In this document: piece by piece, positions 6,245 through 59,394 of the stretch
How positions within the stretch are numbered: position 1 is the stretch's first letter
Layout of the letters: every line of letters begins with the position of its first letter
Virus record (IMG/VR): IMGVR_UViG_3300009184_000029
Location: 1-64,000 of that record
Reading direction: 5' to 3' (one strand)
DNA: 64,000 bases
Translations under genes and position numbers: made by a program
The notes under the pieces: model-generated
What the model saw: the letters and a program-made list of their open reading frames with translations, nothing else
Told to the model about the DNA's origin: nothing
Database searches by the model: none

Positions 6245-6437
6245 TAATTGGGAAGTAAAATGGGTGACAAACGAAATTGCCCGAGGTCTTGATTACTGGT
6301 CAAGACAAGAGAACGAGAGTATGTCGTTGTATAAAGTTGAGGTTGGAGGTAAAACAATTTCAATGGACGAAACTATGACAATCACTCCAATCACTTTAAA
6401 TGATAAAAGAATAAAAATTACTGTTACAGAGGAATGA
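6234..6437 (+). CDS. Hypothetical protein
   Basis: Overlapping ORF in operon. Confidence 0.55.
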   Translation: MENNNWEVKWVTNEIARGLDYWSRQENESMSLYKVEVGGKTISMDETMTITPITLNDKRIKITVTEE

Positions 6438-7303
6438 AAGGGATTGTACTAGCAGGGGGTTCAGGAACGAGATTACATCCGCTTACATTATCGGTAACCA
6501 AACAATTGTTACCTGTGTATGATAAGCCGATGATTTACTATCCGTTGGCGACATTGATGTCTATGGGTATAAATGATATTCTTATCATATCTACACCACA
6601 AGATGAACCATTGTTCCAAAATCTATTGGGTGATGGAAGTCAGTGGGGAATTAATTTAAATTATGAAATTCAGGAGAAACCAAATGGACTTGCTGAGGCG
6701 TTTATTATCGGTGAGAAGTTCATTGGTAATGATTCTGTTTGTTTAGTTCTTGGAGATAATATCTTCTATGGTATTGATACTGATAAGGTTAAGGAACAGA
6801 TTGAGAATTTGAAAGGTGGATTGGTGTTCGGTTATCAGGTTAATGACCCTGAAAGATATGGTGTGTTGTCTTTTGATAAGAAAGGTAATGTCATAGGTAT
6901 TCAAGAGAAACCCAAGAAACCAAAGTCAAACTATGCGGTACCTGGTTTATATTTCTTTGATAATTCTGTAATTAAAGTTGCATATAATGTTAAACCATCT
7001 GATAGAGGGGAACTTGAAATCACTGATGTAATTCAATATTATATGGATAACAGTTCACTTAAAGTTCATAAGTTACCACGAGGTGTTGCTTGGCTTGATA
7101 CAGGGACATTCGAGTCATTAAATCAGGCGGGACAATATGTTGAGACCATTCAGGAGAGACAAGGTCTAATGGTAGGATGTATTGAAGAAATTGCTTATCA
7201 AAACGAGTGGATTAACTCTGAAAAATTGGAGTTGATTTCTGAAAAATATAAAAAGAATTCTTACGGAAAATATTTGAAAAAGATAATATCTAATATTGAA
7301 TAA
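6434..7303 (+). CDS. rmlA: Glucose-1-phosphate thymidylyltransferase
   Basis: GIVLAGGSGTRLHP, KQLLPVYDKPMIYYP, LGDNIF, EKP, SDRGELEITD, AWLDTGT. Confidence 0.97.
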   Translation: MKGIVLAGGSGTRLHPLTLSVTKQLLPVYDKPMIYYPLATLMSMGINDILIISTPQDEPLFQNLLGDGSQWGINLNYEIQEKPNGLAEAFIIGEKFIGNDSVCLVLGDNIFYGIDTDKVKEQIENLKGGLVFGYQVNDPERYGVLSFDKKGNVIGIQEKPKKPKSNYAVPGLYFFDNSVIKVAYNVKPSDRGELEITDVIQYYMDNSSLKVHKLPRGVAWLDTGTFESLNQAGQYVETIQERQGLMVGCIEEIAYQNEWINSEKLELISEKYKKNSYGKYLKKIISNIE

Positions 7304-7646: not shown

Positions 7647-7820
7647 ATGAATAATGAAGAATTGGTGGAAGAACTATTATGGGCTTCTCATAAAAAGGGT
7701 ATTGGTAATGAAGTTTTAGATAAGGCGAAAGAGATTCAAACCTCAATAAGAATACCTTGGGTTGATTGTGTACAAAGGGCATACATGGAATTGGATGTGG
7801 ATAACTATGAAATGGATTGA
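7647..7820 (+). CDS. Small hypothetical protein MNNEELVEELLWASHKKG... (57 aa, not in ORF track)
   Basis: Manual translation; fills the gap between 7644 and glnII on the same strand. Confidence 0.55.
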   Translation: MNNEELVEELLWASHKKGIGNEVLDKAKEIQTSIRIPWVDCVQRAYMELDVDNYEMD

Positions 7821-7828
7821 TTAAAAAT

Positions 7829-8848
7829 ATGATATACAAATTAGAATATATTTGGTTAGACGGATATACACCTGAACCAAACATCAGAAGTAAAACAAAG
7901 ATTTATAATTCAGAATCTGAACCAAACTTAGAAGACTTACCAATTTGGAGTTTTGACGGTTCGTCAACTAAACAAGCTGAGGGTAAATACTCTGACTGTA
8001 TGTTGAAACCTGTTAAGATGATTCAGGACCCACAAAGAAAAAATGGTTATTTAGTTCTTTGTGAAGTATTAAATCCCGATTTGACACCTCACTCATCAAA
8101 TCACAGAGCTCAATTAAAAGATGACTCAAATACTTGGATTGGATTTGAACAGGAATATTTCATTTATGATGGAGAGTTACCTGTTGGACATAAAAAGGAA
8201 CTTATGAAACCACAAGGTGAGTATTATTGTGGGATTGGTAATGGTAATGTTTCAGGAAGAAACATTGTTGAACATCATTTGGATGTTTGTCTATCTTCAG
8301 GTCTTAATTTAACAGGTATAAATGCTGAGGTTGCACTTGGACAGTGGGAATTCCAAGTTATGGGAAAAGGAATATTAGATTCTTGTGACCAACTTATTCT
8401 TTGTCGTTTCTTATTACAACGATTAGGTGAGACTTACGGTGTGAAAATCAATTACCACCCAAAACCACTTCACGGAGATTGGAATGGTTCAGGACTACAC
8501 ACAAACTTCTCAACCAAGTATATGAGAGAAGTTGGAGGTAAACCTTACTTTGATATGTTATTCTTTGCAATGGAACAAAACCACTCAAAACACATTGAGA
8601 ACTACGGTTCAGATAATCAAATGAGATTAACTGGTGAACACGAAACACAATCTATTGATAAATTCAGTTGGGGTGTGAGTGACAGAGGAGCATCAATTAG
8701 AGTACCACAAACTACTGAGAAAAGTAATTGGAAGGGTTATATTGAAGATAGAAGACCTGCATCAAACGCCAATCCATATTTAATTGTGAAATCGATTTCA
8801 GAAACTGTTAATATGGTTGAGATGAATTTTAAAATGGTTAATGTGTAA
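7829..8848 (+). CDS. glnII: Glutamine synthetase type II
   Basis: KLEYIWLDG, IWSFDGSST, GFEQEY, GINAEVALGQWEFQ, DWNGSGLHTNFST, RLTGEHET, DRGASIRVP, EDRRPASN. Confidence 0.95.
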   Translation: MIYKLEYIWLDGYTPEPNIRSKTKIYNSESEPNLEDLPIWSFDGSSTKQAEGKYSDCMLKPVKMIQDPQRKNGYLVLCEVLNPDLTPHSSNHRAQLKDDSNTWIGFEQEYFIYDGELPVGHKKELMKPQGEYYCGIGNGNVSGRNIVEHHLDVCLSSGLNLTGINAEVALGQWEFQVMGKGILDSCDQLILCRFLLQRLGETYGVKINYHPKPLHGDWNGSGLHTNFSTKYMREVGGKPYFDMLFFAMEQNHSKHIENYGSDNQMRLTGEHETQSIDKFSWGVSDRGASIRVPQTTEKSNWKGYIEDRRPASNANPYLIVKSISETVNMVEMNFKMVNV

Positions 8849-21302: not shown

Positions 21303-21602
21303 TTAATCAATAATCAATAAATTCTTAAATTCAAAACCTGTCTTACTCTCAACCCAATCTCCGATAATATTCATCGTTTCACCTCTATCTAAACTAAAAA
21401 AGGAGGATATCGTTTTTACAAAATCTTTTTTTATAAAACAATATGTTTGTTTGAAGGTGGATATTATGATTTCACGGTTTTCAATATTATAATTGTTCCA
21501 AAAGTGATAATCACCATCATTGTTTGTAACATAAAAGTTTTGTATATTAAGATAACGAAAGATTACTTTCTCTAACTGTGATTCTGTTATCAAGTATTTC
21601 AT
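21303..21602 (-). CDS. Paralogue-family protein (MKYLITESQ)
   Basis: Leader A; IFRYL...ISSFFSL...IIGDWVE. Confidence 0.75.
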   Translation of the reverse strand: MKYLITESQLEKVIFRYLNIQNFYVTNNDGDYHFWNNYNIENREIIISTFKQTYCFIKKDFVKTISSFFSLDRGETMNIIGDWVESKTGFEFKNLLIID

Positions 21603-21955
21603 ATATATAAATCAAGAAATTGTTCTAAGGTAATACCAAGAGGTCGAATACCTAAAAAGTTCATAAATTCAGATTCATCATAACTATCACCTCTATCATC
21701 AAGAATCAATGGGTGGTTTGAACTATAATTCATTTGATATAACACCTTATGATTATCATCCAATTCTATAAGATACATCGGACCATAGTTATCCATCAAA
21801 CTTCTCCTTAATAGACCATCGTAAGTAAAATGGAAATCAAAATCATTCAGTATTCCACGTATACTTGGGTCAAGCTCCACACGACCTGTGAGGTCAATAT
21901 TAAACTTATCCTTAATAAATGTTTTTAATTTAGATTCGGTGATTAATAGTTTCAT
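21599..21955 (-). CDS. Leader-bearing protein (MKLLITESK)
   Basis: Start reassigned; AATATTTATAA box upstream. Confidence 0.65.
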   Translation of the reverse strand: MKLLITESKLKTFIKDKFNIDLTGRVELDPSIRGILNDFDFHFTYDGLLRRSLMDNYGPMYLIELDDNHKVLYQMNYSSNHPLILDDRGDSYDESEFMNFLGIRPLGITLEQFLDLYI

Positions 21956-21968
21956 GTTATTATAAATA

Positions 21969-22301
21969 TTAATTAGACGGAATCTGCATCCACTCAGATT
22001 TAATATTATTGGCCCACAAACAAAAATCAATATCTACCTTTAAGGTCTCCCCAACCCATCTACCGATAGTTTCCCTAGCATCATAACCTTGCATAGAAAA
22101 AAAAGAAGCAACCTCACCAATTAATCCTGTATATATGACACATTTACTATCCTTTTTAAAATATCTAATCTGAGCATATTCATCACCTTCTGAATTTACA
22201 AAGTATACACCATCACCCTTCTCAATCTGAATGAAGTCCTGATTATCCAAGTACTTAAAGATTATTCTATCTAATTGTGATTCTGTAATTAAGTATTTCA
22301 T
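21969..22301 (-). CDS. Paralogue-family protein (MKYLITESQ)
   Basis: Close paralogue of 24409; ends WV+12aa+10aa+MQIPSN. Confidence 0.8.
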   Translation of the reverse strand: MKYLITESQLDRIIFKYLDNQDFIQIEKGDGVYFVNSEGDEYAQIRYFKKDSKCVIYTGLIGEVASFFSMQGYDARETIGRWVGETLKVDIDFCLWANNIKSEWMQIPSN

Positions 22302-22308
22302 AATTTAA

Positions 22309-22587
22309 TTAATCCGAGTGTAAGAATTTAAGTAATGCTCTAATATATTGGGAACGTTTCTCATAGAATTCAGTTTCATTACCATATTGTAAAAACTCCT
22401 CACGTCTATGTCTATCAATGAAATCTTCAATTAATCCATAAATGTGGTCATCCCTGTCAGCAGAATCTTCAAAATCTTCATCATCCATAGCGTAGTTATA
22501 ATCATCCTTAAGCGCTTTCAATTCATCTATAGAAAACCTTCTAAGTAAAAATATGTCTAACTGTGATTCGGTGATAAGGTATTTCAT
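22309..22587 (-). CDS. Leader-bearing acidic protein (MKYLITESQ)
   Basis: Start reassigned; overlapping TATCTTTG and TATTTATA boxes upstream. Confidence 0.65.
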   Translation of the reverse strand: MKYLITESQLDIFLLRRFSIDELKALKDDYNYAMDDEDFEDSADRDDHIYGLIEDFIDRHRREEFLQYGNETEFYEKRSQYIRALLKFLHSD

Positions 22588-22689
22588 TATATATAAATAC
22601 AAAGATAGGGACAAAGTTGAACTATATATATTGGGTTAATAATTTCATAAGAATATGATAATATGGTTTGTTCTTTACTTTCTATACTT

Positions 22690-23400
22690 ATGGAAATGGA
22701 ACTATCAAAGTTATTAACCATTGTTATACCTTGTAAGAACGAGGGGATAACTATCAATCAAACTTTATCGATATTAAATTTCCAAAATGGTATTGATGGT
22801 GTTAAGGTTATTGTTTCCGATTCTTCGGATGATGGAACAACATATCATTTGGAGAACAGAAACAGGGACTATTTCAATCTTGACATCATTCAGGGTGGGT
22901 TACCTAGCAAAGCAAGAAATAATGGAGCAGAACGAGCTGAAACTCCGTTTGTATTGTTTATGGACGCCGACATGATGATACTTGATACAAACTTACTTCA
23001 GGAGTGTATGGAGATGATGAGAAGAGAAAGGTTAGATTTGTTGACAACAAAGGTAAGAACAACAAACGGAAAATACAATTATGTGTTCAGAACATTTGAT
23101 TTGATTCAGGGGATAACAAGATATATCACACCATTTTGTTTAGGTGGGTTTATGTTAATGAGAAAGTCAACATTCATAACACTAAACGGATTTGATGAAG
23201 AGGCACAGGTTGCTGAGGATTACTTACTATCAAAACAGATAAAGACAAATAGATTTAAGGTATATAGAAAAACCATATTCACATTACCAAGAAGGTTTGA
23301 GAGTAAGGGATTATGGTATATGACAAAGTTAATGATAATGTCATTCCTTAACAGAAATAACAAGGAGTTTTTCTCCGACCACAATTCATATTGGAAATGA
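22690..23400 (+). CDS. Family 2 glycosyltransferase
   Basis: TIVIPCKNE, VIVSDSSDD, KARNNGA, VLFMDAD, GGFML, AED. Confidence 0.9.
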   Translation: MEMELSKLLTIVIPCKNEGITINQTLSILNFQNGIDGVKVIVSDSSDDGTTYHLENRNRDYFNLDIIQGGLPSKARNNGAERAETPFVLFMDADMMILDTNLLQECMEMMRRERLDLLTTKVRTTNGKYNYVFRTFDLIQGITRYITPFCLGGFMLMRKSTFITLNGFDEEAQVAEDYLLSKQIKTNRFKVYRKTIFTLPRRFESKGLWYMTKLMIMSFLNRNNKEFFSDHNSYWK

Positions 23401-24107
23401 GATACAGAACAATTATAATGAGTGATTTACATCTTGGCGCAAAACAATCACAGACGGACAAGATAATAAAGTTCTTGGAAGAAAACCAAACGGACAAGTT
23501 AATACTAAACGGAGATATCATAGATGGTTGGGCACTCAAAGGTAGTGGTAAGTGGACAAAGGATTGCACCAAGATATTCAGGAAGTTTATGAAGATGTCG
23601 GAGAAGGATACAAAGGTAATTTATATAAGGGGAAACCACGATGACTTCCTAAAAGATTTCATTCCGTTTAAGTTAAACAATATAAGGATTGTAAGGAAGT
23701 ATGTACATGAAGGAATGGACGGAAGAACATACTTTTGTTTTCACGGGGATGTATTGGATTTCGTTATAATGGAAGCAAGATGGTTGGCAGTAATCGGTGG
23801 ATGGTCATATGATATTGTCATTAAGTTTAATACTCTATACAACAAAATAAGAAAGTGGTTTAACTTACCATATCATTCACTGGCAAATACAATAAAACAA
23901 TCTGTTAAAGGGGCGATTAACTTTGTATCTGATTTCGAAGAAAACGCGAAAGGTTTAACAAAACAGAAGGGATATGATGTTGCGGTGTGTGGACATATTC
24001 ATCACCCGAAGTTAGAGAATGACTATATGAATTCAGGAGACTTTTGTGAGAACTCTACATGTCTTGTAGAAGATTATAATGGGGAGTGGAAAATAATTAC
24101 TATATAA
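23391..24107 (+). CDS. UDP-2,3-diacylglucosamine hydrolase-like metallophosphoesterase (LpxH-like)
   Basis: SDLHLG, LNGDIIDGW, RGNHDD, FHGD, CGHIHHP, YMNSGD. Confidence 0.85.
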   Translation: MEMRYRTIIMSDLHLGAKQSQTDKIIKFLEENQTDKLILNGDIIDGWALKGSGKWTKDCTKIFRKFMKMSEKDTKVIYIRGNHDDFLKDFIPFKLNNIRIVRKYVHEGMDGRTYFCFHGDVLDFVIMEARWLAVIGGWSYDIVIKFNTLYNKIRKWFNLPYHSLANTIKQSVKGAINFVSDFEENAKGLTKQKGYDVAVCGHIHHPKLENDYMNSGDFCENSTCLVEDYNGEWKIITI

Positions 24108-24396
24108 TTATAACTTCTTTAACTCTTCTATCCAAAGTATTCTCAACCCATCTAGCGATAACATATTTAGCATTATCAAATTCTATAGAGAAGAAATTTT
24201 TAATCTCATCAATTAACTCAAAACTTATTACACAGTCACCACTTCTAAAGTATTGGATTAATGAGTCCTTATATTCATCACCCTCTGAATTAACGAAGTA
24301 TATTGTATTTCCTTTTTTAATCTGAATAAAGTCCTGATTGTTCAAGTATATGAAGATTACTCTATCTAATTGTGATTCTGTGATTAAGTATTTCAT
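24100..24396 (-). CDS. Paralogue-family protein (MKYLITESQ)
   Basis: Close paralogue of 24409; ends RWVENTLDRRVKEVIII. Confidence 0.8.
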   Translation of the reverse strand: MKYLITESQLDRVIFIYLNNQDFIQIKKGNTIYFVNSEGDEYKDSLIQYFRSGDCVISFELIDEIKNFFSIEFDNAKYVIARWVENTLDRRVKEVIII

Positions 24397-24408
24397 TATT
24401 GATAAATA

Positions 24409-24741
24409 TTAGTTAGATGGTATTCTCAACATATATCCACGGTGGAAAGATACAAAAGGGGTGTCAGTGACCCTCATTTGGAGGGTATTCTCAACCCACC
24501 TACCAATAACTTGTTCAGAATCAGATTCATCCAAAGAAAAGAAGGAAGAAATTTCATCCATTAATTTGTAATATATCCCACACCAACCATCATCTTTATC
24601 ATATCTGATTTGAGCATATTCATCACCTTCTGAATTGGCGAAGTATATATTATCACCCTTTTCTATCGGAATAAAATCTTGGTTGTCAAGATACCTAAAG
24701 ACTATTTTATCTAATTGTGATTCGGTGATAAGATATTTCAT
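24409..24741 (-). CDS. Paralogue-family protein (MKYLITESQ) whose 3' end overlaps a CRISPR-like repeat-spacer unit
   Basis: Ends RWVENTLQMRVTDT-PFVSFHRGYM-LRIPSN. Confidence 0.8.
   Translation of the reverse strand: MKYLITESQLDKIVFRYLDNQDFIPIEKGDNIYFANSEGDEYAQIRYDKDDGWCGIYYKLMDEISSFFSLDESDSEQVIGRWVENTLQMRVTDTPFVSFHRGYMLRIPSN
24413..24495 (+). CRISPR. Minimal repeat-spacer-repeat unit with a type VI-B-like direct repeat (degenerate partial repeat, ~30-nt spacer, full repeat)
   Basis: Full repeat 24460-24495 GGTGTCAGTGACCCTCATTTGGAGGGTATTCTCAAC with ACCCTC/GAGGGT stem; partial repeat ending GGTATTCTCAAC at 24430; intervening spacer 24431-24459/60. Confidence 0.6.
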
Positions 24742-24760
24742 ATGATAATAAATACAATTA

Positions 24761-24768
24761 TATTTATA
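24761..24768 (+). promoter_or_regulatory. Putative late promoter box TATTTATA
   Basis: 5 nt before ATG 24774. Confidence 0.6.
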
Positions 24769-24773
24769 ATATT

Positions 24774-25229
24774 ATGAATCTACAAGAAAACGTAAGAAGA
24801 ATATTAAGGGAAGAATACACCGCAAAACAAATGAAGTTATTAACTCTGGCAAGTAAGGTGGGGTTACTAAAGGTAGGGAAAATGCTCGGAGGTGTAGAAG
24901 ACCTTATAAATGTGTTAGGTGATGAGTTCCTTACAACAAACAATAAGATTAAGATTATTAAGGAAATAGTAGAAACAACCGATGATGAATATATTACACT
25001 AATGGACATGAATGAAAATCCAATAGTTCTCAAGGATGAAGACGGTAAACTTTCACAAATAGAAATGATATATAGAGAAGATGTTGCAGTGTTCCATTAT
25101 GGTGGATATAAATACTCACAAGATTTAGGTGAAAGTTATATGTCTTATGAAGAACTACCAAAATATGTATTAGATGATATTTTTGATATGGTATTAGATT
25201 TCTATACAGGTACTTTAGAGAATAACTAA
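24774..25229 (+). CDS. Leader-bearing protein (MNLQENVRRILREE)
   Basis: Leader B; GLLKVGKMLGG segment resembles those in 15278 and 19597. Confidence 0.7.
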   Translation: MNLQENVRRILREEYTAKQMKLLTLASKVGLLKVGKMLGGVEDLINVLGDEFLTTNNKIKIIKEIVETTDDEYITLMDMNENPIVLKDEDGKLSQIEMIYREDVAVFHYGGYKYSQDLGESYMSYEELPKYVLDDIFDMVLDFYTGTLENN

Positions 25230-25688
25230 TTATTGATTTAATACCTCTTCCACCCCTCTTGTGAAGGGTCCAAAATATGATTCCGTTGTAGATACCTTAT
25301 GATTTAATACCTCTTCCACCTTCCAAGGAACACGAACTTTAACATCGCACGTTGTGGATACCTTATGATTTAAGACCTCTTCCACCAAATGGGCATCATT
25401 GAAAAACGCATCACCAGTTGTGGATACCTTATGATTTAATACCTCTTCCACCCAAGAAGATAGAACAGGACTAAAATCACCTGAACTCATAGAGAATATT
25501 TTAAAAAACGAATTAAAAAAATCATATCTCCACCATAAAGTACCTGACTTATCAAGTTCGAAGTACCAATGTTTATTATCCCTATTAATGAACCATATTG
25601 ACCCATTATAAGGAATAATCTCACAATCACCCAACTCTTTATATAGGTGTTTAAAAATAACTTGTTTAAATCTATCTGTAATAACCAT
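25230..25688 (-). CDS. Paralogue-family protein with in-frame CRISPR-like repeat tail (VEEVLNHKVSTT x3 + VEEVLNQ)
   Basis: N-terminal ~80 aa align by eye to the family; host-type promoter upstream. Confidence 0.75.
   Translation of the reverse strand: MVITDRFKQVIFKHLYKELGDCEIIPYNGSIWFINRDNKHWYFELDKSGTLWWRYDFFNSFFKIFSMSSGDFSPVLSSWVEEVLNHKVSTTGDAFFNDAHLVEEVLNHKVSTTCDVKVRVPWKVEEVLNHKVSTTESYFGPFTRGVEEVLNQ
25234..25452. CRISPR. CRISPR-like mini-array: 3 full 36-bp repeats + 1 truncated repeat, three unrelated 30-bp spacers
   Basis: Repeat GTTGT(G/A)GATACCTTATGATTTAA(T/G)ACCTCTTCCACC at 25285, 25351, 25417; partial at 25234-25254; spacers 25255-25284, 25321-25350, 25387-25416. Confidence 0.7.
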
Positions 25689-25700: not shown

Positions 25701-25925
25701 GTAAGAAATTAAGAAATAAACAAACTCATTCCCCCATCCCCACTTTCAGTGGTCGTTCCATTCCCCTTCGGGTCATTACACTAATGGGTACATTCATTTG
25801 TTTACTTCTTAATTTCCCCCATTGTATGAATCTATAATAAACGTACAACACTAATCTATAATAATCCCCCATAATGAAAGACACATACTATGAAGGGACA
25901 TATAGTTATACTGTTAATGGTATTG

Positions 25926-34169: not shown

Positions 34170-34457
34170 ATGAAAGTCATAATTACAGAATCTCAGGTTG
34201 AAAAAGTAATCAATGTTTTTTCTAAGTTTTTGAATAAAGATTCACGTAAAGGTGTATGTAATGTCACGATTGATTATGACGATATGATGGATAGGTTTGT
34301 TTTAAATATTTTTTTTGATAGAATGTATTTGGTCAATTTAGATAGTGGTGGTAAACAAACAAATTTTATAGTTAAAGTTGTGAATGAGTATGGTAACTTG
34401 TTTAGAAGTTTATCAAGTAGAAATCCATTAATTTATCAACACTACGATGATTGTTAA
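34170..34457 (+). CDS. Leader-bearing protein (MKVIITESQ)
   Basis: Start reassigned; GGTATTTATT upstream. Confidence 0.7.
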   Translation: MKVIITESQVEKVINVFSKFLNKDSRKGVCNVTIDYDDMMDRFVLNIFFDRMYLVNLDSGGKQTNFIVKVVNEYGNLFRSLSSRNPLIYQHYDDC

Positions 34458-47654: not shown

Positions 47655-48137
47655 ATGAACTCGTATTTCCTAAACATTAGCAACGAAGAAAAAAATTCAA
47701 TTGCTGAAAAACATAGAACTTTATATAATGGATTCCAAACTATGAAAATCCATAAGACAAATGAAACCCCATTAAATGTTGAGGATTTGGCATTAGATAA
47801 AGGTGGAGTTACTCTAACCTCTAAAAATGAAATATCAACTTATACTAACACTATGTATATGACAGAATCTAAATCTGAAGAAGTATGTGAGGAGTGTGGT
47901 AAAATGTATGAGGGTGAAGGAGAAACTTGTGAATGTTGGAAAAATGAGATGTATGAAGGGGAAGTATGTGAGGAGTGCGGTGAGATGTATGAAGGAGAAG
48001 TATGTGAAGAGTGCTCAGGGATGAAATACGAGTATGAGAACATCGAAGAGTCAATACAGTTAAAATCTAAGTCTAAACAAGTACATGAAAGTATTGAAAA
48101 GACTTTAGATATGTTTAGAAGATTCGGAAACAAGTGA
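47655..48137 (+). CDS. Leader-bearing protein with EVCEECG/MYEG repeats
   Basis: ISNEEKNSIAEKH leader; three EVCEEC units. Confidence 0.65.
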   Translation: MNSYFLNISNEEKNSIAEKHRTLYNGFQTMKIHKTNETPLNVEDLALDKGGVTLTSKNEISTYTNTMYMTESKSEEVCEECGKMYEGEGETCECWKNEMYEGEVCEECGEMYEGEVCEECSGMKYEYENIEESIQLKSKSKQVHESIEKTLDMFRRFGNK

Positions 48138-48542: not shown

Positions 48543-48812
48543 ATGAAAAAAATCATCAATTCATACGACGTTATACTTTCAGTTATGAACGTAGTTAATG
48601 AACAAGAAGGTGGAGATACTGGAGGTGGGGCAAGCACATCAACTGCAACTGCAACAAAGTGGGAATCCGGTGTTAAAAGAGGAAAGGCTAATCCGATTGA
48701 TTCAAAAATTAAATGGGAATCAGGGTTAACAAGAGGAAAGGCTAATCCGATTGATTCAAAAACTAAATGGCAATCAGGGTTAACAAGAGGAAAAGCTAAC
48801 CCATTGAGTTGA
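48543..48812 (+). CDS. Protein with three 18-aa KW(E/Q)SG..RGKANP repeats
   Basis: VVNEQE motif then 54-bp tandem repeat. Confidence 0.7.
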   Translation: MKKIINSYDVILSVMNVVNEQEGGDTGGGASTSTATATKWESGVKRGKANPIDSKIKWESGLTRGKANPIDSKTKWQSGLTRGKANPLS

Positions 48813-56829: not shown

Positions 56830-56906
56830 GCCCCCATAGCTCAGCTGGATAGAGCAACAACCTTCTAAGTTGTGGGTCACACGTTCGAATCGTGTTGGGG
56901 GTACCA
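56830..56906 (+). tRNA. tRNA-Arg(UCU)
   Basis: Acceptor GCCCCCA/TGGGGGT, D-arm AGCTCAGCTGGATAGAGC, anticodon arm ACAAC-CTTCTAA-GTTGT, TTCGAAT loop, encoded CCA. Confidence 0.97.
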
Positions 56907-59000: not shown

Positions 59001-59394
59001 TGGTGGAGATGCCGGGGGTCGAACCCGGGTCCAAAAAAGTTTACCATAAAACACTACACGCTTAGGTTATTGTTTTTCTAAACAATCCAAAACTTCACAA
59101 TTCCCTTATTTTATAGTGGTTCGGTTTACTGAGAACTAATCCTCCACTTTGTTTCTTTTTGGGTAGAAACCACACCACAACTACGACTTCTGTTGCAAGG
59201 TTGTATGTCTGCCGACCCCTAGTAGGTTAATCCTAGATTAAGCTACAGATACTTCTTCAGTACGGATTAAACCGATTGTAGAAAGTTTGTTGATAACGTT
59301 GCCGTTTGTAATTTGAACCAGTTTAACGGAGTTAATTCAGCTCCGGCGTGCGTTTTATGACTAATCCATTCCTGTCAAAGCCAAAAACATCCCC
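59001..59394 (-). ncRNA. ssrA: tmRNA; predicted tag reading frame 59303-59238 GNVINKLSTIGLIRTEEVSVA*
   Basis: 5' GGGGATGTTTTTGGCTTTGACAGG; 3' CCCGGGTTCGACCCCCGGCATCTCCACCA; acceptor GGGGATG/CATCTCC with G-U; 394 nt. Confidence 0.93.

Follow-up and report, generated by a model that had tools for sequence, protein, structure and literature searches.

The 3ʹ end of a jumbo-phage gene is organized as a CRISPR-shaped array of repeats and cassettes that is translated as part of the gene product, as judged from sequence, and this arrangement gives a large protein family interchangeable 10-residue end pieces. The gene is located within a 64,000-nucleotide stretch of DNA (hereafter the window) that corresponds to positions 1 to 64,000 of the 222.8-kb IMG/VR contig IMGVR_UViG_3300009184_000029. 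A preliminary description of this locus had proposed a solitary type VI-B (Cas13b)-like direct repeat with one spacer, located antisense to a virion-leader gene. Our analyses instead indicate that this element is the last unit of an array whose reading frame is continuous with that of the gene, and that it is most likely not a free-standing antisense RNA. Similarity between the repeat and type VI-B repeats of Flavobacterium is far beyond chance expectation. The arrangement is best viewed, with moderate confidence, as a CRISPR-derived (VI-B/II-C-type) array that has been fused to and translated with a phage gene. A role as a Cas13b decoy or guide is possible but unsupported. The features of the locus are listed below.

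Features of the locus and of related genes in the window (positions refer to the window).
Position	Strand	Feature	Sequence or encoded product
24409..24741	-	Family-1 gene (110 aa) with an N-terminal MKYLITES motif, a confidently predicted alpha/beta domain and a C-terminal repeat-cassette-repeat module	
24460..24495	-	Full 36-nt repeat; on the plus strand, the Cas13b-like repeat of the preliminary description	Encodes V83-T94 (VENTLQMRVTDT); plus strand reads GGTGTCAGTGACCCTCATTTGGAGGGTATTCTCAAC
24470..24486		Hairpin inside the repeat	ACCCTC (24470-24475) and GAGGGT (24481-24486) closing the loop ATTTG
24431..24459	-	29-nt hypervariable cassette (the 'spacer'), 38% G+C against 30.5% for the window	With the next G encodes PFVSFHRGYM
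24419..24430	-	Truncated terminal repeat, the first 12 nt of the repeat, exact; GGTATTCTCAAC at this site lies 65 nt upstream of its copy at 24484-24495	Read in the +1 frame gives LRIP; 24409-24418 then gives S-N-stop
25230..25688	-	Family-2 gene (152 aa), homologous to family 1, whose ORF runs through a 4-repeat array	
25230..25452	-	Family-2 array: full repeats at 25417-25452, 25351-25386 and 25285-25320; cassettes at 25387-25416, 25321-25350 and 25255-25284 (30 nt each); truncated repeat plus stop codon at 25230-25254	Full repeats VEEVLNHKVSTT
24100..24396	-	Array-less paralogue	Ends WVENTLDRRVKEVIII-stop
21969..22301	-	Paralogue with a tail of the same length that looks like a fossil unit	Ends IPSN-stop

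Each sequence feature named in the preliminary description proved to be present at or immediately next to the position given for it. The one exception to its wording is the partial upstream copy of the repeat, which had been called degenerate but is exact over 12 nucleotides. The claim that the element occupies the same W-V-E position in the protein as the array that begins at 25230 also was confirmed, because the two proteins are homologous (BLASTP E = 2e-5) and the two repeats align in the same codon register.

To evaluate the resemblance to type VI-B repeats, for which the preliminary description had invoked a Bergeyella repeat, we used three published repeats. The element matches those of F. 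columnare and F. branchiophilum (PMC5395568) at 23 and 25 of 36 positions, respectively, and that of PspCas13b (bioRxiv 10.1101/2023.03.10.532141) at 19 of 36 positions. The score of 25 is the single best among all 127,930 36-mers of the window on both strands, and the family-2 repeats rank second to fourth, on the coding strand. Apart from the repeats of these two arrays on either strand, nothing in the window exceeds 22. Among 200,000 random composition-matched 36-mers carrying the same hairpin, none reached 25 and the probability of reaching 24 or more was 5e-6. By comparison, true VI-B repeats of different genera share 22-29 of 36 positions with each other. The score of 25 against the F. 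branchiophilum repeat is obtained on the plus strand, whereas the coding strand scores 20-21 and the family-1 consensus scores 22 on the coding strand. Repeats from array-bearing genes score 21-25, but the homologous 36 nucleotides in nine other array-less relatives from related phages score only 13-16. However, families 1 and 2 align best to VI-B repeats in different registers or orientations relative to their homologous codons, and part of the likeness could therefore be convergent or coincidental.

The family-1 gene belongs to a large and unannotated protein family. We identified 57 related loci in viral contigs and at least 1,723 clusters of proteins of ~110 amino acids, none of which is named and none of which has a Pfam domain. 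An AlphaFold2 model of the family-1 protein (pLDDT 85.6) places the last predicted helix at residues 72-87, which contain WVENTL. Searches of Pfam, PHROGs, PADLOC and NCBIfam returned nothing for the family-1 and family-2 proteins, and a blastn search with positions 21-27 kb of the window against GenBank phages produced no match. A fold search against PDB gave nothing below E = 0.3, and the only matches among predicted structures (BFVD) were uncharacterized proteins of uncultured phages. The model of the family-2 protein was of low confidence (pLDDT 52) and suggests only short helices on a disordered string.

Related phages revealed that the unit is not solitary, but rather represents the one-unit state of arrays that carry 2-4 full repeats in relatives. 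The family-1 consensus repeat is GTTGAGAATACCCTCCAAATGAAGGTCACAAACACC, and arrays contain up to four full repeats plus a truncated one, always starting at the V codon of WVEN. Their inserts are 29, 30 or 31 nucleotides long, and these lengths occur in similar numbers. The cassette sequence at this position is unrelated in every relative. The C-terminus LRIPSN or LRIPSK followed by a stop codon is the +1-frame reading of the first ~18 nucleotides of the repeat. In contrast to the variable tails of these genes, the tail of the paralogue at 21969..22301 is conserved in the locus designated L051. In the sister family 2, arrays have up to nine units, and all 145 distinct units have inserts of exactly 30 nucleotides. 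Thus, near-identical repeats separated by dissimilar inserts of nearly constant length, which define a CRISPR array in the structural sense, are observed in both families.

Several lines of sequence evidence indicate that the arrays are translated. In family 2, only 1 of 116 unique cassettes has an in-frame stop codon, against 31, 72, 47, 32 and 44 in the other five frames, and intact ORFs that run through the arrays reach 264 amino acids. Both repeats carry stop codons in both alternative frames. Substitutions between orthologous cassettes fall 8/11/21 on codon positions 1/2/3, with 20 synonymous and 16 non-synonymous changes, and cassette G+C content falls across codon positions 1, 2 and 3 (0.46, 0.40 and 0.35), as expected of coding sequence. 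In family 1, none of 23 cassettes of 29 or 31 nucleotides has an in-frame stop codon, and in-frame two-unit proteins exist of the form X10-VENTLQMRVTNT-X10-LRIPSN. The family-1 cores also are non-random in composition (W 4.3%, D+E 4.6%). However, the coding-like codon composition of family-2 cassettes and the tryptophan-rich family-1 cores fit in-situ evolution under selection as well as they fit filtered acquisition.

The cassettes also turn over in a manner that parallels the dynamics of CRISPR arrays. Distances between cassettes are bimodal, with either at most 6 differences or about 22 of 30, and they centre on 22 of 30 mismatches, as for random sequence. Two related loci, L060 and L063, have 100% identical gene bodies of 236 nucleotides but different gene-proximal cassettes, such that cassettes change faster than point substitutions accumulate. 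Unique cassettes lie near the gene, with a mean relative position of 0.24 against 0.56 for shared cassettes (p = 5e-5), whereas older cassettes are shared distally. The full repeat is adjacent to the gene and a truncated distal repeat is present throughout. The polarity of the arrays therefore points to the gene's own strand rather than to an antisense RNA.

Conservation of the hairpin and of the peptide in orthologues had been proposed beforehand as a test of the RNA interpretation, and the refuting condition is half fulfilled, in that the peptide is conserved. Across 39 distinct repeats, 70.5% (gene strand) and 81.2% (plus strand, with G-U pairs allowed) of stem cells remain paired, which is no better than column shuffles (246/500 and 297/500), and no covariation was detected. 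The perfect 6-bp stem is present in only 11 of the 39 repeats. We also considered whether G-U pairs could reveal the transcribed strand of the hairpin, but this was rejected because the asymmetry is explained by Leu and Arg/Lys codon changes and neither strand exceeds shuffled controls.

We searched for a Cas13b partner and for the origins of the cassettes without success. The largest ORF of the window encodes a ClpB-like AAA protein of 681 amino acids, PADLOC, Pfam and NCBIfam gave no Cas hit among about 40 ORFs, and no cas Pfam domain appears in the next ~20 kb beyond the window. A scan of 185,579 species genomes for the repeat core yielded only two hits, inside unrelated genes of Methylomonas and Acholeplasmataceae MAGs, one of which reads as an SSB-like gene, and both were rejected as chance matches. 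A permissive Rfam search of positions 24300-25600 returned no CRISPR-DR family and only chance snoRNA-like hits. No protospacer was found for any cassette in ~0.7 Mb of related phage DNA or in the window, in IMG/VR (four cassettes), in JGI metagenomes (one cassette) or in GenBank phages (about 35 cassettes), although the collection scans considered exact matches only and therefore provide weak negative evidence. The only exact matches to the cassette at this locus in IMG/VR and in JGI metagenomes are from the same phage.

On the gene's strand, the full repeat supplies the end of the domain's last predicted helix plus the next few residues, the cassette supplies a hypervariable 10-residue peptide, and the truncated repeat, read one base out of frame, supplies the conserved C-terminus and the stop codon. 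Our data establish that the same gene in related jumbo phages carries 1-4 such units and that a sister family carries up to nine, that the arrays are kept open in the gene's frame, that cassettes are mutually unrelated, rapidly gained and lost and newest next to the gene, and that the repeats are significantly similar to those of Flavobacterium VI-B systems. Beyond this, we infer that the architecture descends from a VI-B/II-C-type CRISPR array that became fused to the gene at its GTTGAGAA codons, and that it may still be written by a Cas1-Cas2 integrase with a 36/30-nt ruler supplied by the host. We likewise infer that the phage uses it as a cassette-exchange device to diversify the C-terminal peptides of a multi-copy family. 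By further inference, these proteins may be packaged in the head and injected, because they carry a T4-style N-terminal targeting motif. The original interpretation is thus partly supported: the element is a unit of a CRISPR-array-like structure, has a significantly VI-B-like repeat and is homologous to the array at 25230, but its proposed solitary, antisense and non-coding nature and its association with Cas13b are not supported.

Perhaps the most serious alternative, although we consider it unlikely, is that the arrays arose purely by protein-level repeat evolution with no link to CRISPR. In this view, a hypervariable C-terminal core flanked by conserved segments, as in multi-core precursor peptides or arms-race effector tails, would be diversified by recombination among many paralogues and by diversifying selection, and both the VI-B likeness and the 36/30 geometry would be coincidental or convergent. 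Maintenance of the ORF, the bias towards synonymous substitutions, the compositional bias and the absence of detected protospacers and cas genes are consistent with this possibility. In addition, some cassettes are ancient and diverge gradually (for example TKMFVIDEFPL, TKMFVIDEFNM and TSMFEIDDDNR), a few family-1 cores have intermediate similarity to each other, and the WVEN codons at the start of the repeat are ancestral because they also are present in array-less paralogues. However, the 3ʹ flank of each cassette is conserved as DNA (GTTGAGAATACC) in all three reading frames, being read as VENT, as LRIP or as a TGA stop, and so it is not conserved as protein. Insert lengths in family 1 vary by one nucleotide in either direction, out-of-frame downstream units persist in some arrays, and cassette distances show almost no intermediates. 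Moreover, the VI-B likeness has p < 1e-5 for two repeats that were singled out on independent grounds and it tracks the presence of an array, and no peptide-maturation enzyme lies nearby.

Less likely still is a functional cas-less VI-B mini-array or RNA anti-CRISPR, as initially proposed, whose RNA would be bound or processed by a host Cas13b as a guide against competitors or as a decoy. Translation of the gene strand would then be incidental, or would serve only to keep the transcript intact. The 36-nucleotide repeat has a central stem and loop of the same form as a VI-B repeat, and the plus-strand order of repeat remnant, 29-nucleotide spacer and full repeat matches the spacer-then-repeat layout of a Cas13b guide. 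With G-U pairs allowed, 81% of stem cells stay paired on the plus strand, and published searches for solitary repeats mask ORFs and found none of type VI, such that this unit would have been missed (PMC10651486). However, the terminal GUUG/CAAC helix that closes VI-B repeats into one long hairpin is not formed, because the plus strand reads GGUG...CAAC and the gene strand GUUG...CACC. The predicted fold is no better than shuffles (z = -0.75, against -2.5 to -3.7 for three real repeats) and is weak for the family consensus, the stem lacks covariation as described above, and the family-2 repeat has no central stem at all. On the gene strand indicated by array polarity, the single cassette is followed only by a 12-nucleotide repeat stub. 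Promoter-like sites number 10 against 11.4 expected by chance, and the plus-strand site is within this expectation. Neither a matching bacterial array, nor a cas13b gene, nor protospacers were found in the searches described above. Decoy, hijack and sponge functions nevertheless are not excluded.

Other origins appear less plausible. Ectopic integration of a new CRISPR into unmodified gene sequence was judged less likely because array-less paralogues are not repeat-like beyond the first ~9 nucleotides, and a diversity-generating retroelement was rejected because whole cassettes are replaced rather than adenine-specific changes accumulating, and because no template repeat is present. Although the hairpin alone is unremarkable (34 of 200 shuffles fold as well) and a 12-mer with one mismatch allowed occurs 0.37 times per shuffled window, a chance hairpin and repeat in an ordinary gene tail is refuted by recurrence of the same module at the same codon in dozens of loci and as multi-unit arrays.

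The closest known systems are the type VI-B arrays of Flavobacterium, which are filled in trans by type II-C Cas1-Cas2 (PMC8092290; repeats in PMC5395568). These likewise have 36-nucleotide repeats with unrelated inserts of 29-31 nucleotides, a variable end next to the leader (here the gene) and a degenerate terminal repeat, and the repeat identity of 22-25 of 36 is as close as that between Prevotella and Flavobacterium VI-B repeats. The family-2 repeat ends in ...TATCCACAAC, and the leader-distal GTTGT repeat end is singled out for in-trans acquisition (PMC8092290). The phage arrays differ in that they lie inside an ORF, are kept in frame and translated, have no cas gene in view, lack the terminal helix (and, in family 2, the central stem), match no repeat detected in a bacterial genome and have no detected protospacers. 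Virus-borne cas-less mini-arrays and solitary repeat units that act as RNA anti-CRISPRs (PMC10651486) also comprise one to a few repeat units on a viral genome that resemble a CRISPR repeat, with no cas genes nearby. However, those units are intergenic, directly downstream of a promoter and at least 90% identical to a host repeat, and none of type VI has been reported, whereas this unit lies wholly within an ORF, is 69% identical at best and is under peptide-level selection.

Other comparisons are instructive at the protein level. Cyanobactin PatE-type multi-core precursors have a conserved leading domain, one or several hypervariable short cores that each follow a copy of a conserved segment, and many paralogues. 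Here, however, the follower is VENT... after internal cores but LRIPSN after the last one, which is the same DNA in a different frame, insert length varies, whole cassettes turn over with new ones at the gene-proximal end, and the neighbouring genes encode a GT2 glycosyltransferase, a metallophosphoesterase and a weak SprT-like hit rather than maturation enzymes. False-CRISPRs, which are tandem repeats inside protein-coding genes, share the repeat-spacer appearance and the absence of companion cas genes but are defined by a lack of spacer diversity (PMC5294841), which does not apply to these cassettes. T4 internal head proteins (PMC9026906) are small, fast-evolving, multi-copy proteins with a shared N-terminal capsid-targeting propeptide of ~10 residues, but have no cassette arrays. 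The cleavage consensus of the gp21 protease is hydrophobic-x-Glu, and the phage motif ends in I-T-E. The motif MK[YLV][LI]ITES occurs on six ORFs, with MKLLITESK on a seventh, and residues 1-8 of the family-1 protein precede the first predicted helix and have low pLDDT. A T4-type portal (Portal_T4), a gp21-family protease (Peptidase_S77) and Gp23 are encoded just beyond the window, and by analogy the proteins that carry the motif may be packaged.

Structures of this kind are systematically filtered out by current methods, because searches for viral mini-arrays and solitary repeats mask ORFs (PMC10651486) and CRISPR finders discard in-gene arrays as false positives (PMC5294841). Even if the link to CRISPR is only ancestral or convergent, the locus still defines a very large, unannotated phage protein family (at least 1,723 clusters) with a cassette-exchange mechanism that no current model explains. 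A more far-reaching possibility, which remains doubtful, is that a CRISPR-type integrase with a 36/30-nt ruler, probably the host's II-C/VI-B adaptation module acting in trans, writes new 30-nucleotide cassettes into the 3ʹ ends of translated phage genes, such that each 'spacer' becomes a new 10-residue peptide on a family of possibly head-packaged and injected proteins. If the inferred CRISPR origin holds, this would be the first type-VI-like repeat structure seen on viral genomes, and the first case of CRISPR-array architecture, and perhaps CRISPR integration chemistry, being used to diversify a protein rather than to store nucleic-acid guides.

The sequence features set out in the preliminary description are real. 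The plus-strand 36-mer reads exactly as written there, with a stem formed by ACCCTC and GAGGGT that closes an ATTTG loop. Its last 12 bases, GGTATTCTCAAC, recur exactly in a second copy (which had been called degenerate), and the 29 bases between the two copies are richer in G+C than the window (38% against 30.5%), as had been claimed. The whole element lies inside an open reading frame (ORF) on the minus strand. On that strand, the 36-mer constitutes codons V83-T94 (VENTLQMRVTDT), the 29-mer plus the next G gives PFVSFHRGYM, and the second copy of the 12-mer is read one base out of frame as LRIP, followed by S-N-stop. The two copies are 65 nt apart, which is not a multiple of three, and therefore the duplicated 12-mer is conserved as DNA rather than as peptide. 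The coordinates of the features discussed here are collected in the table below, in which L-numbers denote related loci from viral contigs.

Coordinates of the repeat element, its relatives and neighbouring features
Feature	Location	Strand	Description
Family-1 ORF	window 24409-24741	-	Contains the whole element
36-mer repeat	window 24460-24495	+ (as read)	Codons V83-T94 on the minus strand
Stem	window 24470-24475 and 24481-24486	+ (as read)	ACCCTC with GAGGGT, loop ATTTG
Second copy of the 12-mer	window 24419-24430	+ (as read)	Exact
Family-2 gene	window 25230-25688		Homologous to the family-1 ORF
Sigma-70-like site	window 24399-24426	+	TTGATA, 16 nt, TATTCT, preceded by TG
Inverted repeat	window 25705-25737 / 25784-25816		33-nt arms, 79% complementary, 46 nt apart; just upstream of the family-2 gene
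Paralogue with fossil-like tail	window 21969-22301	-	Tail of the same length, also ending in IPSN-stop
N-terminal motif MK[YLV][LI]ITES[QK]L	window 21573-21593, 22272-22292, 22558-22578, 24367-24387, 24712-24732 (all -), 34179-34199 (+); also the ORF 21599-22030 (-)		Heads at least seven ORFs from at least three unrelated families
Auxiliary-looking genes	window 7817-8848, 6434-7303, 22663-23400, 23391-24107	+	A glutamine-synthetase-like protein, a nucleotidyl transferase, a GT2 glycosyltransferase and a calcineurin-like phosphoesterase; the last two sit in the middle of the paralogue cluster
Tandem repeats	window 48653-48807 and 47945-48014		54 nt x 2.9 copies (89% matches) and 36 nt x 1.9 copies (94% matches); both periods are multiples of three
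tRNA-Arg	window 56830-56906	+	Anticodon TCT; the only tRNA in the window
tmRNA	window 59001-59394	-	Full length; Rfam RF00023, 133 bits, E = 7.5e-52; not reported by ARAGORN
Family-1 multi-unit arrays	L002 5247-5481, L004, L005, L011/L012, L033 5241-5343		Gene-proximal insert of 31 nt in five of the six distinct arrays
Loci with several arrays	L073 3219-4600; L077 624-3853; L070 3397-3828		Several arrays within a few kb, made entirely of cassettes seen nowhere else (17 in L073)

The window is bases 1-64000 of a 222.8-kb IMG/VR contig, and the genome is phage-like. In addition to the tmRNA and tRNA-Arg, the window encodes thymidylate synthase, a ClpB-like AAA protein and an endolysin-like protein, and just beyond it lie a terminase, a T4-type portal, a gp21-family prohead protease (Peptidase_S77) and Gp23. 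The ORF belongs to a family (family 1) with several tandem paralogues in the window and 57 related loci in viral contigs of up to 322 kb. In a large protein collection the family comprises at least 1,723 protein clusters, none of which is named or carries a Pfam domain. AlphaFold2 predicts a confident alpha/beta domain (pLDDT 85.6), in which WVENTL sits at the end of the last helix, residues 72-87. A fold search gave no PDB match, and the only predicted-structure matches are uncharacterised phage proteins.

The unit is the minimal state of real arrays, rather than the solitary repeat that had been proposed. In relatives, the same gene ends, from the same V codon, in arrays with a 36-nt repeat (consensus GTTGAGAATACCCTCCAAATGAAGGTCACAAACACC) and unrelated inserts of 29, 30 or 31 nt. 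There are up to four full repeats plus a truncated one, as in L002, and the truncated last repeat is followed by a conserved TAACTAA. One paralogue in the window carries a diverged repeat and ‘spacer’, and its tail is conserved between phages, including at L051, such that it looks like a fossilized unit that is no longer variable. The gene that represents family 2 in the window is homologous to the family-1 ORF over its whole length (E = 2e-5), and its own repeat, VEEVLNHKVSTT, aligns with VENTLQMRVTDT in the same codon register. Relatives of this second gene carry up to 9 units.

These arrays are translated. In family 2, all 145 distinct units have inserts of exactly 30 nt, so the period is 22 codons, and only 1 of 116 unique cassettes has a stop in the gene's frame, whereas the other five frames have 31, 72, 47, 32 and 44. 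Intact ORFs of up to 264 aa run through the arrays and end in the truncated repeat. Both repeats contain stop codons in both alternative frames, so an open frame through several units cannot be accidental. Furthermore, orthologous cassettes differ mainly at third codon positions (21, against 8 and 11 at positions one and two), with 20 synonymous and 16 non-synonymous changes, and cassette G+C falls from 0.46 to 0.40 to 0.35 across codon positions.

In family 1, first inserts are 29 nt (13 cases), 30 nt (9) or 31 nt (10) long, and none of the 23 inserts of 29 or 31 nt has an in-frame stop. A 29-nt insert yields ...X10-LRIPS(N/K)-stop, a 31-nt insert stops at the repeat's GT-TGA, and a 30-nt insert reads on into the next repeat. 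Among the 120 closest proteins the X10-LRIPSN form dominates, although this ranking favours tails like that of the query, and in-frame two-unit proteins also exist among them. The 89 distinct cores are compositionally odd (W 4.3%, D+E 4.6%, K 3.1%). In five of the six distinct family-1 multi-unit arrays the gene-proximal insert is 31 nt (the sixth is 29 nt). The ORF therefore stops at the TGA of the next repeat and the older in-frame units downstream are silent, such that only the newest cassette would be displayed.

The cassettes nevertheless behave like CRISPR spacers. Pairwise distances are bimodal, with at most 6 differences for orthologues and otherwise about 22 of 30, as for random sequence, and with almost nothing between. 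Cassette maps look like spacer maps, in that distal cassettes are shared in conserved order with internal deletions, whereas unique cassettes concentrate next to the gene (mean relative position 0.24 against 0.56, p = 5e-5). Two loci, L060 and L063, have 100% identical 236-nt gene bodies yet entirely different proximal cassettes, and therefore whole-cassette turnover outpaces point substitution, although a few cassettes are old and diverge gradually. The loci that hold several arrays of otherwise unseen cassettes show how large the cassette pool is.

We compared the window with three printed type VI-B repeats, the only ones used for this comparison. The element scores 25/36, the best of all 127,930 window 36-mers, and the next three are the family-2 repeats, on the gene strand, at 23-24. 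Apart from the repeats of these two arrays on either strand, nothing else exceeds 22. Random composition-matched hairpins reach 24 with P = 5e-6 and never reached 25. True VI-B repeats share 22-29/36 among themselves, whereas II-C and V-A repeats score 8-16 against the phage repeats. Array-bearing family-1 repeats score 21-25, but the homologous 36 nt of array-less paralogues score only 13-16.

VI-B repeats are near-palindromic, so the window's family-1 repeat scores 20-21 and the family consensus 22 on the gene strand. Array polarity favours that strand. The full repeat is next to the gene, the stub is distal and new units appear gene-proximally, and distal cassettes are shared between one- and two-unit proteins. 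In F. columnare, the VI-B array is transcribed from its leader and is filled in trans by the II-C Cas1, and the two 36-bp repeats share their leader-distal GTTGT end (PMC8092290). The family-2 repeat ends in TATCCACAAC, against TATCTACAAC in F. columnare, in the orientation expected from the gene-proximal variable end of the arrays.

A role with Cas13b was evaluated in several ways. Real repeats fold into a closed hairpin of -11 to -12 kcal/mol (z = -2.5 to -3.7), whereas the window repeat lacks the closing helix (z = -0.75), the family consensus folds weakly and family 2 has no central stem. Stem pairing across 39 distinct repeats was no better than in shuffled columns. No Rfam CRISPR-DR family matches. 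A sigma-70-like site, whose -10 element lies inside the truncated repeat, points along the plus strand, but the number of such sites in the region is within chance expectation. No cas gene was found among about 40 window ORFs or in the next ~20 kb, a search that left out about 140 kb of the genome. No array with the repeat core was found in 185,579 species genomes, where the two hits are chance matches inside unrelated genes. Likewise, no protospacer was found in ~0.7 Mb of related phage DNA or the window, in IMG/VR for four cassettes, in JGI metagenomes for the window cassette (where the only match is the same phage at 99.99% identity), or in GenBank phages for about 35 cassettes, although the collection scans were restricted to exact matches.

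Among alternative explanations, a purely protein-level origin fits the selection data and remains possible, although we consider it doubtful. It does not explain the DNA-level conservation of the 3ʹ flank in all three frames, the +/-1-nt length variation, the bimodal cassette distances, or the fact that VI-B likeness tracks array presence. A functional Cas13b guide or decoy, as had been suggested initially, fits the plus-strand geometry but is improbable. It fails the structural, genomic-context and non-coding criteria. The initial interpretation is partly supported. Chance is excluded.

Our analyses establish that the element is coding sequence and is the one-unit form of a repeat-cassette array, that the arrays are kept open and their peptides are under selection, that the cassettes turn over in a polar, CRISPR-like manner, and that the repeats are VI-B-like. 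From these findings we infer, without having shown it, that a VI-B/II-C-type array was fused to the gene at its GTTGAGAA codons, and that it is now used, possibly still through host Cas1-Cas2, to swap C-terminal peptide cassettes. The N-terminal motif shared by several ORFs, MKYLITES in this protein, looks like a capsid-targeting or protease-cleaved propeptide when considered together with the nearby T4-type portal, Peptidase_S77 and Gp23. By inference only, this motif and the gp21-type protease suggest that these are T4-style head-packaged proteins, a class known for arms-race variability (PMC9026906).
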